Below, one piece after another: positions 24,726 to 57,700 of a stretch of 64,000 bases of DNA. The stretch lies in the NCBI RefSeq assembly GCF_001194135.2, contig NC_069002.1, positions 8,797,990-8,861,989 on the forward strand, given 5' to 3'. The notes under the pieces were generated by a model, which saw nothing but the letters and a program-made list of their open reading frames with translations, had not been told where the DNA came from and ran no database searches. The DNA comes from Octopus bimaculoides (lineage: Eukaryota). Numbering within the stretch: the first letter of the stretch is position 1; every line of letters starts with the position of its first letter. Both the position numbers and the translations under genes were made by a program.

Positions 24726-25539
24726 GCATTATTTGTTCGTGCAAGATTATATGACAATAATGGTTTAGCCCATTATAAAGCAGATTGTTATTGCAATAAT
24801 GGTTTAGTCCAAACTAGTATTTTACATTAGCTTGTATCAATGATAAAATCAATTTATAATTTAAATATCACTGATCTTCCAATAATAAAATCAAATTTTG
24901 TTATCCGGTGCAGCGAACAATTTGCAATATCAGTACATTTGTTATACATATTGACGATACCATAAATTGGTGTTATATTTTCTATATTTAATAATTTATG
25001 AAATTTTGATTTAAAAATACAGAAAAGATCAGATCAGATTTATTCAGAGGAAATCAATCAGCAACATTGATTATAGGTGATTCCTATAGACATTCTTTGT
25101 ATCTAATGAAATATTGAATGCAATTGGCTCATTCAATCATGCCTTCAATTCCATATTTGCTGTAATATCGATAAATGAAGGAACATTGTGTGTTTGGGGT
25201 GGAGTATGTCACGAAACAGGACCTTAAAATGTATTAACACTTTACTTTCAGAACCCATTTTGCGCCATATCTTCTTTTGTACCAGCAGTTTAATCATGTT
25301 ATAAATTAAGCATTTTATTTCCATTTCTTATTTTTTAACCATATTTTTAAAAATGAACTGGCACCCTGTCGTTTAGGATGACAAAATTTACTAACAGAAG
25401 TAACTTCATAAATTTCACTTCAATCCGCACACCTCGTTAAATTCGTCTACAAATTTCTTATTTACTTTTGCGACGTTTCGTGTTGTTTTGCTGTTGACGG
25501 AATAACTGGGGTTTTTTTTTTTTTTTGGTTACAAAATAA

Positions 25540-25775
25540 GCTACACAAAACGTGTTTTTAAATTACGTGTATTTACCGTATATACATATATAAGTTGAAA
25601 ACTTTCTTTTAACATTTCACGTAACGTCTATGTTCCACGCTGTCATGAGTTGGAGAGTTATTAGTGGAGAAACTTGGTATCTCAACTACTAGCAATTGAG
25701 ACTTGCGTAATCTAGACAGCAATTTTACATTTCATTATTCTCTTTAATCCGGGCAACGCCGAGTATTTCTGCTAT
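25540..25775 (-). mobile_element. Non-autonomous Helitron-like repeat fragment
   Basis: Minus strand begins tagcagaaatactcggcgttgcccgga, like the ACTAGC..CCCGGCGTTGCCCGG termini I associate with microsatellite-linked invertebrate rolling-circle elements; shares ctccaactcatg with about 52480. Confidence 0.4.
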
Positions 25776-26611
25776 TATATATATATATATATATATATAT
25801 ATATATATATATGTATGTATATATCACGTTATCACATGATCGACCAAACTCTCGAATGTTGTTATACACCGCTGATCACAATGCACTTCGCATTGTTTTA
25901 GCTTTCGAATGATATCACCCTGCTGATTTCGCAGGTAGTCCAATGTAAATAAGCGTATATGTATGTATGTATGTACGTACGTACGTATGTATGTATTTTA
26001 GCGTTTATAAATTTCTTTTTATTACACCTTAATGCTTTTTAAATGATATAAGAATAAATATTCAACCGTAAATATATATTTACATTACTTAAACTGAACG
26101 TTTTTGTGTAGATGTATACAAAAGATGCGAGTGAATTAAAAGTTCGTTTTATTTTTATAGGTCTATATCGTTTATATCACTGTCCAAACACACACATACA
26201 TACACACACACACTCACACATGTACATGCACACACACACGGTTATATATATTTGTATACGTGTATGTGTGCATATGTATACATATGTGCGAGTGCGTCTT
26301 GCCGAAGTCGGGGTTTCTGTCTATCGAAGCTTAAATTGTTGATCAAAGACATTAATAGCAGTGTCAGATAAATATGCAAATTTATGTAAATATTATTGGC
26401 GACGAATCAAATATTAATTAAGCGGAGTCTTGAAAATTTATGAAATATAATAGAGATTGAAAAGTTTAATATAGAAATTTTATTTAATTCTGGAAGAGAA
26501 ATATGGCTGAAGGTAGATATAATAATTTTGTTATCTTCCTCATTAGATATGAGACTGCACTTTGTCAGTGTCATAGTGCGAGATATATTATATCTTTTTT
26601 ATAAGTGAAGG

Positions 26612-26935
26612 TGAGTGGCTTAGTCATTAGGGGCATTCGGCTCTCGATCGTTAGGTCATGAGTTCGTTTCTCGCCGGCGCTTTGTGTCTTTTGAGCAAGA
26701 CACTTTATTTCACGTTGTTCCAGTCCATTCAGCTAGCAAAAATGAATAGCAATTGTAATTCAGAGGGCCAGCCATGACACATTCTGTTTAATGCTGAATC
26801 TCCCTGAGAACTACGTTAAGGATACACGTGTCCGTGGAGTACACAGCCACTTGTACATTAATTTCATGATCAGGCTGTTCCGTTGATCAAATCTACTGAA
26901 ACACTCTTCATCGTAACCGACAGTGTACCAATTAT
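26612..26935 (+). mobile_element. tRNA-headed SINE (family D variant)
   Basis: gtgaaggtgagtggcttagt..tagg..gagttcgtttctc (A and B boxes), ttgagcaagacactttatttcacgttg, 3' part matching family D. Confidence 0.8.
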
Positions 26936-53902: not shown

Positions 53903-55050
53903 CGGTGAGCTGGCAGGATTGTATCGTTAGCATGTCGAACAAAATGATTAGTGTTACGTTCTGAGTTCGAATCCCACCGACGTCAGCTTTGCCGTTCATC
54001 CCTTCGGGGTCGATAAAATAAGTACCAGTCAAGTACTTTGAATCGATGTAATCAACTGCCCTCCCCACCATCCACCCAAATTTCAGGCCTTACGTACACA
54101 GTAGAAACAAAATGCTGAGCGGTATTTCTCCCGGCGCTTTACGTTCTGAGTTCAAATCCCGCCAAAGTTAACTCGGCCTCTCATCCTTTCGGGGTCGATA
54201 AAGTAAGCACCAATCAAGTACTTGGATCGATCTAATCGATTAGACACCTCTATCCCAAATTTCAGACCTTACGCCTACAATGGAAACAAAATGTTGAGCG
54301 GTATTTCTTCTGTCTCTTAATGTTCCGAGTTCAAGACCCACCGAAGTCAATTTTGCATTTCATCCCTTCGGGGTCGATAAAATAAAGTACAAGCCACGTT
54401 CCTTCCCCTCAAAATTACTAACCTTGAACCCTGCAACAGACCGGCGTGCTATCGTTTCTGCCAGCTCGTCGCCTAAAAATAAACTGAATATCATCATAGC
54501 AAATTTTGGCACAAGGCCAGCAATTGCGGGGTAAGGGTAAGTCGCTTACATCGACCCCAGGCTGGTGATCAACTGGAACTTATTTATCGATCCCAAAAGG
54601 ATGAAAGGAAAACTCGACCTCGACCGAATTTGAACTCACAGCATGAAGACGGATGAAACGCCACTAAACATTTTGTCTAGCTTGCTCATGATTCTGCCAG
54701 CTCGCCTCTTTTATTATTGATGTCAAATGTTGGCACAAGGCCAACTGGTACTAAACTTTATTGACCCTTGAAAGATGAAAGGCCAATTCGACCTCCGGCG
54801 GGCTCACGATTCTGCCAGCTCACCTCTTTTATTACATATTTTATTGATTTCAAATGTTGGCACAAGGCTGGCAATTTTGCTGTTGAAATAAGCCAATTAC
54901 ACCCACCCCAGTGCTTAACTGGTACTAAATTTTATCGATCCCTGAGAGATGAAAGGCCAATTCTACCTCAGCCGAATTTAAACTCAGGACTTGAATACGG
55001 ACGAAAAGCCTCTAATTGTTTTGTCCGGCGTGCTGACGAATCTTCTAGCT
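53903..55050. mobile_element. Cluster of SINE family C copies: about three on + (53903-54420) then about three on - (54445-55050)
   Basis: Repeated ttctgagttc.aa.ccc..cga..tc / catcc.ttcggggtcgataaa on +, and their reverse complements after 54445. Confidence 0.9.
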
Positions 55051-57185
55051 AATTTCCTTTACTAATATTTTATTGAAATCAGAATGATAAATGCTAAGGA
55101 TAAAAACGTCCTTGGCGATGTTTGAAATCAGGAAGCTAAGAAATTGGATTGAATTTTCTAAAGTCTATATTACGACTCTGTACACTTCCTGCTGTACCAA
55201 GGAATCACCTCAGTGTCTTTGATAATAGCAATTTCTTTGTTGGCAGCAATAGTTGTGTCAATAATGGTGCTGCCATCGTTTAATACCTTTATTGATTACA
55301 GTTTCTGATAGAATATATTATTATCTCTAACGCGGATGTATATATATATGTGTGTACATGCGTTAATAAATATACACATATNNNNNNNNNNGCGTGTGTG
55401 TATAATTGTACATATGCTATGTGGAAACATTAAACGCGATATGTTTTTCCTCTCGCAGTTTCTCTCTCTCCCTTTCTCTTCCTCCCTCTCTCTCTCTCTC
55501 TCTCTCTCTCTCACTCTCATTCTCTCTCTCTCTCTCTCTCTCTCACACACACTCTCTCTCTCTCTCTTTCCATTTCTTTTTCCTTTATTCCCTTGTCAAT
55601 GAGCGTTGGCTTTTCCATTTTTCCCGAGCGTCAAACTAATACATCTGCTTGTTTTTCCCTTACCTTATCTCTGCCTATTGTTTCCTGTACATTTGAACCA
55701 TATGTGTGTATGTACGTGTGTGTGTGTGCTTCGTGTGTATATGTACGTGTGTGTGTGTGTGTGTGTGTGTAATGATTTACATACTTGTGTATTTGTTTAA
55801 TTTGATAATTTAAAAATAAACTTAATATATCAATTATATATCAATCCTAGAACGGTTGCCAGAGTGATACTGTGAATGAAATGTGCACTTACTGAACAGA
55901 GACTGCACAAAAAAAAATTGCAGTAAGGTTATTGGCCTCTTTCGTTATTTTCATATCATGTTCATCCGTCCGTTGCAGAAGAATAAATGTTAATATTCAA
56001 CAAAATTAAATATTGATGGTTACTTTCAACGAAATCGCTACTAAAACCAAGCGTACAGAGAAAACCAATCAACACAACCTATTTAACAATATAAACAAGA
56101 GATTTGAAAAGCATAAATTTCAGTACCTAAATTGTACTCAATTTCCACATCGTGTAGAAAGGAGTTGGTATCATATGGAATTACTATGAGGTATTTTTTT
56201 TATTCACCAAGCTTTTAACACAAATATTTGCGGAATATTTTTTTGCATAAGATAGCTTTATACTGAAACTGGTTTGAAGTCAATAGTTTTTAAATACTCA
56301 TTTACTATACACGTAATGAAAACTGCTTTAGATGCTGATGTACCACAAAAAGTATAAAGCCAATGTTGTTTTACGTCAAAAGAATCTAGAACCTTCGAGA
56401 GAACATAAAATAATTCGTTTTTAACAGAGGGACTAGAAGTAGATTAGGTTATAAATATTCCTTTGTACTATAGGCACAAGGCCTCAAATTTGGGGGGCGG
56501 GGGTTCTATTACGAAGTTCTTAAAATTTCTAGTTGGTGGTAATCGATTGTGTATAGCACTATTTCATTCTTTTTGGAAATCTTCAGCATGAGTTAACCTG
56601 TAAATTATTAATTCGGTATATTACGAATAGAGACATTTCGTTAAATTAAATTAAATAAATATTAAAGATGAAATTAATTACTATCCGGAAGAAATAGTGA
56701 ATTTATGTAAGAAGTGGGTGCATAATATGATGTTTGTGTACTCATTTTGCTTGGTGTTTAGTGTCCGAATTAAACAAGATTTTAGGCATTGTGCCATAAC
56801 AGAAACATTCCAACAGACAATGATGATTTATCGACATCACACGAAATATGGAATCGGTGGCATGATTGAGTGAATGAACCAGTTATATTTAATATTTTAC
56901 TAAAAGCAAAGAATGTCTGCAGAAATCATACATAATCAATGTTGATGATTGATTTCATTAGAATTAATCTAATGTGATTTCTTCTTTTATTTTTATGCTA
57001 AAATTTCATAAATTATTAACTCTTGATAATATGACACCAATTTATATGTGTAACAAATGTGCTAACATAGCAAATTGTTCGCTACACCGGATATCAGAGA
57101 TTGGTTTTATTATTGGAATACCAGTGATATTTAGATTATAAATTGATTTTATTATTGATACAAGTTAATATAAAATACTGGTTTG

Positions 57186-57700
57186 GACTGAACCATTATT
57201 GCAACATAATATTTCACTACATAATGGCCTAAACCATCATTGTAATGGAATAATTCACTATGTAACGGACTAAACTACTATCGTAATGTAAATAATTGCC
57301 CATATAATGGACTGAACCATTATTGTCATGTACGAGTTCACTATATAATGGACTGAACTATTACTGTCACGTAAGAGTACACTAGTACACTAGTGAAGGC
57401 GCGTGGCCTAGTGGTTAGGCTTTTGTACTCACGATCGCTAGATCGTGGGTTCGATTCCCTGATTAGCCGGCACGTTATGTCCTTGAGCAAAACACTCCAT
57501 TTCACGTTGCTCCCCCTTTCGATCACCGGGGAAAGTTGGCCTGCTCGTCTAGCCAACAGGGTGGTATCATCTGAAGGCTAAACCGATACAAAAACGCATT
57601 GTGACCAACATATGATAGCCCGGTCGGTCACGTGATCACCTAAATAGTACACTATACAACCTACTAAACCATTATTATAATGCAATAGTTGGCTATATAA
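57186..57700 (+). repeat. About 41-bp minisatellite (6-7 degenerate units) interrupted by a SINE
   Basis: Units begin ggactgaaccattattg, ggcctaaaccatcattg, ggactaaactactatcg, ggactgaaccattattg, ggactgaactattactg; resumes after 57654. Confidence 0.85.
57393..57644 (+). mobile_element. tRNA-headed SINE with 10-bp TSD
   Basis: gtgaaggcgcgtggcctagtggttagg..gggttcgattccc; TSD tagtacacta at 57383-57392 and 57645-57654. Confidence 0.93.

Follow-up and report, generated by a model that had tools for sequence, protein, structure and literature searches.

The 64,000-nucleotide stretch of the Octopus bimaculoides genome analysed here (the window; RefSeq assembly GCF_001194135.2, NC_069002.1, positions 8,797,990 to 8,861,989, forward strand) carries two similar arms facing each other across a spacer. 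Alignment of the window against itself using BLASTN gave a colinear chain of minus-strand matches joining 24.75-28.26 kb to 57.25-51.44 kb. Within this chain, four blocks have exactly one partner each in the window, in reverse orientation and in the same order, with E values of 1e-22 to 1e-105 and 83-88% identity: I1 (24751-25176 with 57246-56826, E 7e-104), I2 (26326-26411 with 53377-53290, E 7e-22), I4 (27613-27893 with 52313-52038, E 4e-88) and I5 (27984-28264 with 51736-51439, E 6e-105). Such a chain is far beyond chance, and the two nearby loci share colinear, multi-block inverted homology, the orientation being scaffold-dependent. An earlier note on this DNA had described six colinear, inverted islands of non-repeat sequence; the self-alignment upholds the inversion and the colinearity but reduces the count to four unique blocks, or five when the parts of I5 on either side of its A-rich tract are counted separately. 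The features of the two arms are as follows.

24751-25176, + strand: left island I1; only partner 57246-56826, 82.9% identity over aligned columns, K2P 0.20, 47 transitions and 24 transversions
25776-26295, + strand: left microsatellite cluster, (TA)n, (TATG)n and (AC)n, colinear with the right cluster at 53760-53420
26326-26411, + strand: left island I2; only partner 53377-53290, 88.4% identity, K2P 0.13
26597-27000, + strand: private SINE L_S1, with a head unlike that of R_S1
27213-27560, + strand: private SINE L_S2, whose body (window 27329-27469) matches the O. vulgaris sample locus L001
27613-27893, + strand: left island I4; only partner 52313-52038, 88% identity, K2P 0.13; runs into a GA microsatellite
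27984-28099, + strand: left island I5a (27984-28040, beginning AAGATGGCGG, 93% identity), then an A-rich tract
28100-28264, + strand: left copy of the core, 164/165 identical to 51603-51439
28262-28410, - strand: antisense SINE head fragment without the usual SINE body, adjoining the left inner end
51131-51438, - strand: SINE-fragment patchwork (sense tRNA-like head, then antisense 5'-truncated SINE tail), adjoining the right inner end
51439-51603, - strand: right copy of the core, 164/165 identical to the left copy
51604-51736, - strand: right A-rich tract and island I5a' (51680-51736), the last sequence ahead of a gap
51737-52037, no strand: gap of 301 N inside the right arm, matching left 27894-27983 (~90 bp: GA microsatellite plus 26 bp)
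52038-52313, - strand: right island I4', partner of I4
52637-53017, - strand: private SINE R_S1, of a young family, with the 13-bp target-site duplication ATATGGAGAATAG / ATATAGAGAATAG
53290-53377, - strand: right island I2', partner of I2
53897-55050, no strand: cluster of three older private SINE copies, R_S2-S4
56826-57246, - strand: right island I1', partner of I1
57184-57700, - strand: right 41-bp minisatellite of ~6-8 units, longer than the left one, its array split by a SINE at ~57385-57645

The window contains 23 N runs. The left arm lies inside one gap-free contig (23839-28860) and the right arm extends across three. The 301-N gap has flanks colinear with the left contig, 52038-52050 representing the last part of the GA repeat; a further gap, of 10 N (55382-55391), falls in sequence private to the right arm. 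The joins between the right-arm contigs are supported, because all three are ordered and oriented as the single left contig predicts. The 23174-bp spacer holds 12 gaps totalling 3994 N (including 41807-41816, 42038-42980, 43494-43942, 44745-44754, 45476-45527 and 47217-47226), so that its length and the inverted, as opposed to direct, relation of the arms rest on scaffolding.

Between the arms K2P is 0.13-0.20 and overall divergence ~12-20%, the alignable total being ~1.1 kb; outside a 165-bp core the arms are about 80-93% identical. Identity climbs inward, with K2P per block falling from the outer to the inner end through 0.20, 0.13, 0.13, 0.07 and 0.006. Private SINEs and fast-evolving microsatellites make up some of the sequence that fails to align between the islands; a further ~0.8 kb in the left arm and ~1.6 kb in the right arm has no recognised source, and indels and selection explain this remainder equally well. 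The (TA)n, (TATG)n and (CA)n repeats upstream of I2 and the GA repeat between I4 and I5 (left 27871-27957) are colinear in both arms and have drifted in length between them. A SINE-like fragment (25826-25945) sits in the left microsatellite cluster, and the left A-rich tract (28036-28104) shows many between-arm indels. At the outer end, the first ~80 bp of I1 are 1.5-2 units of the 41-bp minisatellite (a 39-41-bp repeat was seen), weak unit-like sequence extends back to ~24728, and the first 60 bp of I1 also match 57267-57329, 57308-57369 and 57663-57710.

The SINEs at 26.6 and 27.2 kb on the left, and at 52.6-53.0 and 53.9-55.05 kb on the right, are all private to their arm. R_S1 is 90-93% identical to 59347-59716, 13474-13736 and 38749-38943, at unrelated loci elsewhere in the window, and carries 11 private substitutions in 336 positions (3.3%). 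An apparent fifth colinear island (26754-26931 with 52815-52637, 81%) was rejected as homologous arm sequence: it is the core common to two SINE subfamilies, which carry different tRNA-like heads and were inserted independently. This stretch of L_S1 is equally similar to 13478-13658 and 59402-59512 (78-81%) and to R_S1 (81%). The arms thus bear lineage-specific insertions made after the duplication, and the private SINEs indicate that the duplication predates them; the order of events is consistent, since the 3.3% private divergence of R_S1 is below the per-lineage divergence of the arms (0.065-0.10). The earlier note had read the SINEs as wholly different between the arms, the duplication as older than their insertion, and the pair as something other than a recent copy or a duplicate made by the assembly. 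All three statements are borne out, the second by the target-site duplication of R_S1, its closer relatives elsewhere and its private substitutions, the last by the K2P values and the private SINEs.

No coding or structured RNA signal was detected in the arms. The islands contain no ORF of more than 59 aa, are not open under the mitochondrial code either, and their mismatches are spread evenly over the three codon positions with a neutral-looking transition-to-transversion ratio of ~2; a pair of protein-coding exons is not indicated by any conserved open frame or third-position bias. Reading frame across the gaps is irrelevant, because nothing here is coding. Stop-free segments of at least 45 aa matched no Pfam family in either arm, no Rfam family reached its gathering score (all sub-threshold matches lay on microsatellites), and a tRNA model search found no tRNA genes. 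Folding stability did not exceed that of shuffled controls on either strand (z +0.77 and -0.84), and neither Rfam, the tRNA model nor folding pointed to a miRNA, snoRNA, snRNA, tRNA or other structured RNA gene. Composition is not promoter-like, being AT-rich with unremarkable CpG content. The spacer holds only decayed repeat-derived ORFs, in agreement with the earlier remark that no recognisable coding exon lies between the arms. The proposal that patchy retention marks functional islands is not supported, given the neutral-looking substitution pattern, the absence of ORF, Pfam, Rfam, tRNA and folding signals, and a patchiness much of which comes from private SINEs and microsatellites.

The pair is ordinary save for the near-identical 165-bp patch at its inner end. 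This core occurs exactly twice in the window, where it is the only pair at 95% identity or more, and shows one difference where the R_S1 clock predicts at least 10.8 (Poisson P=2.4e-4; P=5.9e-4 when CpG sites are left out). It also stands apart from I4 (Fisher p=3e-6) and from the neighbouring islands (p=3e-6 to 3e-10). The core, which is the only real oddity of the pair, was missed by the earlier reading of the sequence.

The inner end of homology is the same base in both arms, detectable on the left up to 28264 only, and the flanks beyond it are unrelated; the outer ends show no clean coincidence. SINE-derived sequence lies at the inner boundary of both arms, a coincidence with a chance of ~3% when ~18% of the window is BLAST-detectable repeat. 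On the left, the heads of L_S1 and L_S2 match the complement of 28262-28316; on the right, five copies of the SINE family that also occurs at 3391-3797 match the patchwork at 51131-51438 over 18/18 bp. A seeming target-site duplication of 8 bp, which would have marked the original arm, was rejected, as it falls inside a SINE fragment.

No third copy of the islands or core was found in 76 kb, comprising the window (56 kb of sequence) and a 20-kb sample locus from O. vulgaris, L001, which does match ~30 SINE segments of the window, including SINEs within both arms. This search bounds a repeat family at roughly <10^5 copies, a family of 10^3-10^4 copies being expected <~0.3 times. Exact scans of metagenomes and an ORF-based protein search each gave no match. 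The arms have neither terminal inverted repeats nor LTR-like direct repeats, and their ends, when read, showed no poly(A) or microsatellite tail, no target-site duplication and no matching flanks. No transposase, reverse transcriptase or integrase remnant was found among the stop-free segments of at least 45 aa (0 Pfam families), as would also be the case for a non-autonomous element.

The account we prefer, to which we would give an even chance, is that ~2-3.5 kb of non-coding DNA was duplicated locally long ago, in inverted orientation ~23 kb away, and has since decayed neutrally. The initial event would have been a DNA-level rearrangement, for example by replication template switch or double-strand-break repair, and not a transposition, because the arms are without mobile-element hallmarks and SINE-derived sequence lies at both inner boundaries. 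SINEs then inserted independently into each copy. Much later, the innermost ~165-180 bp may have been recopied from arm to arm by a short ectopic repair or gene-conversion tract, which would have reset the patch to ~99.4% identity and stopped at the edge of homology. We attribute the near-identical core to putative ectopic repair or gene conversion, constraint being less probable. When two sequences are only 85-93% identical, homologous repair between them is as a rule strongly suppressed, so that a recent conversion tract would be a rare event. It counts against conversion that the tract would need to stop exactly where homology ends, and against the duplication itself that ~0.8 kb and 1.6 kb of unaligned sequence in the left and right arms have no recognised source and that the inverted orientation depends on 12 scaffold joins.

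A serious though less probable alternative is that the arms are two copies of an unclassified non-autonomous interspersed repeat of low or middle copy number, inserted in opposite orientations at sites 23 kb from each other. The terminus of the element would then form the sharp inner end that both arms share, and the 165 bp would be a terminus conserved in its source lineages. That homology stops at the same base against unrelated flanks, and that the arms are non-coding, would suit such an element, and a minisatellite at one end together with internal microsatellites is common in non-autonomous elements. The lack of a third copy in 76 kb is weak evidence, given the number expected; nevertheless, none is present in the window or L001. 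The arms also lack terminal inverted repeats, LTRs, a poly(A) tail, a target-site duplication and any transposase or reverse transcriptase remnant, and their outer ends do not coincide cleanly. If the near-identical terminus meant that the copies are young, moreover, they could not carry a private SINE with 3.3% private substitutions, nor the older private SINEs. It speaks for a repeat that ~45% of the O. bimaculoides genome is repetitive (PMC12988792).

It is improbable that the pair is functional, with the islands, or at least the core and the upstream AAGATGGCGG block, acting as duplicated regulatory or non-coding RNA units under selection; this would cover the convergent promoter or lncRNA proposed earlier, for which the sequence offers no support, as well as cores pairing as dsRNA if co-transcribed. 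The core shows far greater conservation than the sequence around it and than the SINE clock would permit, it is the sole near-identical duplicate in the window, and in the left arm the AAGATGGCGG block is preceded, at a distance of ~20 bp, by a TATTTAA motif. AAGATGGCGG itself presumably resembles a YY1-type initiator-proximal motif, which is a lead only and not a test. Against these points, there is no Rfam family, folding or ORF and codon signal, the sequence is AT-rich with ordinary CpG, and the other islands diverge at neutral-looking rates with a transition-to-transversion ratio of ~2. Still less probable is the specific proposal that the core would be a strongly constrained element (a regulatory module or unstructured ncRNA exon), or that the two cores would pair across ~23 kb as a 165-bp dsRNA. 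An assembly artefact, in which the reads of one paralogue built both cores in a short-read scaffold or a mis-oriented left contig turned a direct repeat into an inverted one, is very improbable: the window is gap-rich (23 N runs), the right core lies just 133 bp from a contig end (51736) and the arms are joined only via 12 scaffold joins, but the arms are proved to be two distinct loci by their 12-20% divergence and by private SINEs that have target-site duplications, the core contains one real difference and has differing flanks on both sides within continuous contigs, and three independently assembled right contigs agree with the single left contig in both order and orientation.

An old, locally arisen inverted duplication has counterparts in the low-copy inverted segmental duplications of FoSTeS/MMBIR type described in human and Drosophila, which likewise comprise two close, non-coding inverted copies with sharp homology ends, repeat-derived sequence at the breakpoint, and later independent decay and insertions. 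Unlike those cases, the octopus junction has no reliably established microhomology and no identifiable parental copy, and the pair, its copies being counted here within the window, is much older than the polymorphic examples usually studied. The ampliconic palindromes of primate X and Y chromosomes also have inverted arms round a unique spacer and evidence of between-arm homogenisation; however, their arms are >99.9% identical throughout and carry genes, whereas 165 bp of ~1.1 kb is homogenised in octopus and genes are absent. With 83-93% identity outside the core, the octopus arms are not a palindrome kept by conversion over its whole length. Converted tracts in duplicated globin genes resemble the core as short near-identical tracts within more diverged paralogous sequence, but the octopus sequence is non-coding, its repeats are inverted ~23 kb apart, and its tract adjoins the end of homology. 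The insertions breaking up the arms, and the rejected island at 26754-26931 and 52815-52637, belong with the cephalopod tRNA-derived SINE families, being multi-copy with tRNA-like heads and, in one case, a target-site duplication; neither the four unique islands nor the core consist of SINE sequence, and no additional copy of them occurs in the window or in the 20-kb sample from O. vulgaris.

No present function is assigned to the pair. The sequence prerequisite of a dsRNA locus, two complementary stretches of 165 nt (164/165 identity), is nonetheless seen. Octopus is known for extensive RNA editing, and if the two cores did lie in a common transcript, their 165-bp duplex would offer a natural substrate to RNA editing or to the production of small RNAs.

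Comparison of the window with itself by BLASTN revealed a chain of colinear minus-strand matches (E values from 7e-22 to 6e-105) between a left arm (~24.75-28.26 kb) and a right arm (~51.44-57.25 kb), which lie as mirror-image copies on either side of a spacer. The aligned blocks (islands I1, I2, I4 and I5), with their Kimura two-parameter (K2P) divergence, and the other features of the arms are listed below.

Features of the inverted arms (left / right coordinates)
24751-25176 / 57246-56826, inverted, island I1, K2P 0.20
26326-26411 / 53377-53290, inverted, island I2, K2P 0.13
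26754-26931 / 52815-52637, inverted, SINE-core match
27613-27893 / 52313-52038, inverted, island I4, K2P 0.13
27984-28264 / 51736-51439, inverted, island I5, K2P 0.07 in its outer part (I5a)
28100-28264 / 51603-51439, inverted, core (innermost 165 bp of I5), K2P 0.006, 164/165 identical
24751-24830 / 57184-57700, 41-bp minisatellite (unit ~ACAATAATGGTTTAGTCCATTATATAGTGAATTATTACATT), only at the outer arm ends
51737-52037 and 55382-55391, N runs inside the right arm
41807-41816, 42038-42980, 43494-43942, 44745-44754, 45476-45527 and 47217-47226, six of the 12 N runs in the spacer

Once low-complexity sequence is masked, I1, I2, I4 and I5 are each matched by exactly one other segment of the window, and the SINE families there have 3-14 copies. 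The (TA)n, (TATG)n and (CA)n tracts upstream of I2 and the GA repeat between I4 and I5 are also colinear across the arms. Together, the minus-strand chain and the colinear microsatellites show that the inverted similarity of the arms is real. No further unique inverted pairs extending the palindrome inward or outward were found in the window. Elsewhere in the window, a second small inverted pair (2716-2880 and 4077-4230; 165 bp, 79% identity, spacer ~1.2 kb) consists of two segments that are each other's sole partner, and a ~150-bp CT-rich low-complexity segment at 6036-6289 is duplicated in tandem (86% identity, offset 102 bp).

The window is AT-rich (36.5% GC), rich in microsatellites and SINE copies, and interrupted by 23 N runs over 64 kb; no convincing gene was found in it. 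The left arm lies in a single gap-free contig (23839-28860) and the right arm is spread over three, whose order and orientation are all as predicted by the left contig, which supports the right-arm joins. The 301-N gap at 51737-52037 corresponds to ~90 bp of the left arm (GA repeat plus 26 bp), with the end of the GA repeat directly past the gap, and the 10-N gap at 55382-55391 interrupts a stretch that only the right arm has. Between the arms, the spacer (28265-51438; 23174 bp) contains 12 gaps totalling 3994 N, so that its length, and strictly also the assignment of the arms as inverted and not direct repeats, rests on scaffolding.

The SINEs of the two arms have separate histories. A left-arm SINE (26597-~27000) and R_S1 in the right arm (53017-52637) differ in their tRNA-like heads and have only a ~180-bp core in common. 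R_S1, bounded by a 13-bp target-site duplication (ATATGGAGAATAG / ATATAGAGAATAG), shares 90-93% identity with copies at 59347-59716, 13474-13736 and 38749-38943 but only 81% with the left-arm element. Given the different heads and the closer relatives of R_S1 elsewhere, the match at 26754-26931 was rejected as paralogy and is a SINE core; the two elements are independent insertions in similar positions by happenstance. The other arm SINEs (27213-27560, 53897-55050 and ~57385-57645) are likewise private to their arm, bearing out the earlier note in its independent SINE histories and in a duplication older than the arm insertions. Its series of six colinear non-repeat islands held in part: I1, I2, I4 and I5 are unique pairs, the SINE-core match is not an island, and a sixth candidate past the inner boundary (28516-28557 / 50556-50517, 36/40) was rejected, being equalled by 8% of control segments. 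R_S1 and its three close copies form the youngest SINE family of the window (n=4; mutual identity 87-93%; 3-7% private substitutions per copy), whose ~180-bp core is common to an older subfamily with another tRNA-like head (e.g. 26597-27000). SINEs in a 20-kb Octopus vulgaris locus taken as a random sample (OX597818.1:34903711-34924058) reach 87-89% identity to window copies (e.g. 7347-7758 of that locus against 3393-3792 of the window), indicating families common to O. bimaculoides and O. vulgaris.

At the inner end, homology breaks off at the identical base in both arms (…GTGATGAGTTT). The left arm continues into an antisense SINE head (28262-~28410) and the right arm into a mosaic of SINE pieces (51438-51131), such that SINE-derived sequence begins 0-3 bp from the end of homology in both arms, in opposite orientations. 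As BLAST-detectable repeat makes up ~18% of the window, two such coincidences have a chance probability of ~3%, which hints at SINE involvement in the breakpoint or at a site that is an insertion hotspot. A proposal that the right arm is parental, based on an 8-bp target-site duplication (AGTTTGCT) of the inner-end SINE, was rejected because its distal copy is part of a SINE fragment in antisense orientation. At the outer ends, both arms run into the 41-bp minisatellite. The left arm has ~2 units of it; the right-arm array has ~6-8 and is broken by a SINE.

Divergence between the arms drops toward the inner end, reaching a single difference in the core. R_S1 carries private substitutions at 11 of 336 comparable sites (3.3%), implying a right arm old enough for at least 10.8 differences in a neutral 165 bp; the one difference found is improbable under this expectation (Poisson P=2.4e-4, or 5.9e-4 without CpG sites). 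Fisher tests likewise set the core apart from I4 (p=3e-6) and I1 (p=3e-10), and no other pair with at least 95% identity over at least 60 bp occurs in the window. Read most simply, ectopic repair or gene conversion would recently have made a short tract of the two inverted paralogues alike. Alternatively, the near-identity may reflect selective constraint, the conserved terminus of an element, or a local assembly error. Neither strand of the core folds more stably than expected, and the core has no Rfam match. Exact look-up of three window ORFs for an independent assembly of the locus found none on record. The probability that the core is a constrained or dsRNA-forming element is small.

A less likely but serious alternative is that the arms are copies of an interspersed repeat family. 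Against this, they lack terminal inverted repeats, LTR-like direct repeats, a terminal tail, matching target-site duplications at their ends, and coding remnants of a mobile element (Pfam, stop-free segments of at least 45 aa), and a third copy of the islands is missing from both the window and the O. vulgaris locus. The latter matches ~30 SINE segments of the window, some of them within each of the arms, and has no match to I1, I2, I4 or I5; a SINE-like copy number for the islands is excluded, and a family of 10^3-10^4 copies is still compatible. Neither the core nor an invariant I4 block had an exact-pattern match in JGI metagenome contigs, and a 777-aa concatenate of all stop-free translations of the islands likewise had no match among 5.8 billion proteins, where ORFs this short are apparently not indexed. 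A reading of the arms as the terminal inverted repeats of a giant transposon was rejected, since the spacer lacks element genes and identity peaks at the inner, not outer, ends.

The spacer holds the sole long non-repetitive ORF of the window (32872-33426), part of a decayed LINE-like ORF tail (32492-33426, plus strand; 185 aa stop-free) with no Pfam domain; its closest named relative is an O. vulgaris hypothetical protein, and its relatives, including Logan/ENA contigs, are 59-66% identical. A cluster of frame-shifted ORF fragments in three frames (35150-35761, plus strand), a candidate hAT-like transposase, was not confirmed as such: it gave 0 word-indexed matches and no Pfam family, and apart from two spurious repeat proteins its only relatives have E values of 3e-8 or weaker. 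For one 61-aa piece there are ~12 relatives, all short and unnamed (E 3e-8 to 1e-3), and the cluster is probably an unclassified decayed repeat. A 53-aa ORF end (40380-40538, plus strand; …PPQFWEEGIFKLKERWRRIVQQNGSYLV), stopping at the gap at 40540, resembles the C-terminus of a mariner-type transposase, a reading for which Pfam gave no match.

Within the islands, no stop-free stretch exceeds 59 aa, mismatches are spread evenly over the three codon positions, and no stop-free segment of at least 45 aa in either arm matches a Pfam family. The islands are not open under the invertebrate mitochondrial code, and a mitochondrial insert was rejected. The islands contain no tRNAs and no Rfam match at gathering score, relaxed-threshold Rfam matches falling only on microsatellites. 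At 26-39% GC they are AT-rich, their CpG content is unremarkable, and their substitutions look neutral (e.g. 47 transitions and 24 transversions in I1). Patchiness results partly from private SINEs and unstable microsatellites, and for the unaligned sequence for which no source was identified (~0.8 kb in the left arm, ~1.6 kb in the right arm), lineage-specific indels serve as well as selection. The idea that patchy retention marks functional islands found no support.

Most likely, non-coding DNA was duplicated locally and in inverted orientation long ago, followed by independent SINE insertions in each arm with microsatellite drift, and then by late homogenisation of the 165-bp patch. As it stands, the arm pair is an ordinary inverted duplicate that has decayed within octopus DNA rich in repeats and free of genes, a further instance of a well-known structure. 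According to a recent review, breakpoint-level analysis of cephalopod rearrangements is still to be done (PMC12988792). As a small case that can be dated, the pair illustrates a rearrangement bounded by SINE-derived sequence, and its 165-bp patch provides a cheap test for either conversion between octopus non-coding paralogues despite 12-20% divergence or an unannotated constrained element.
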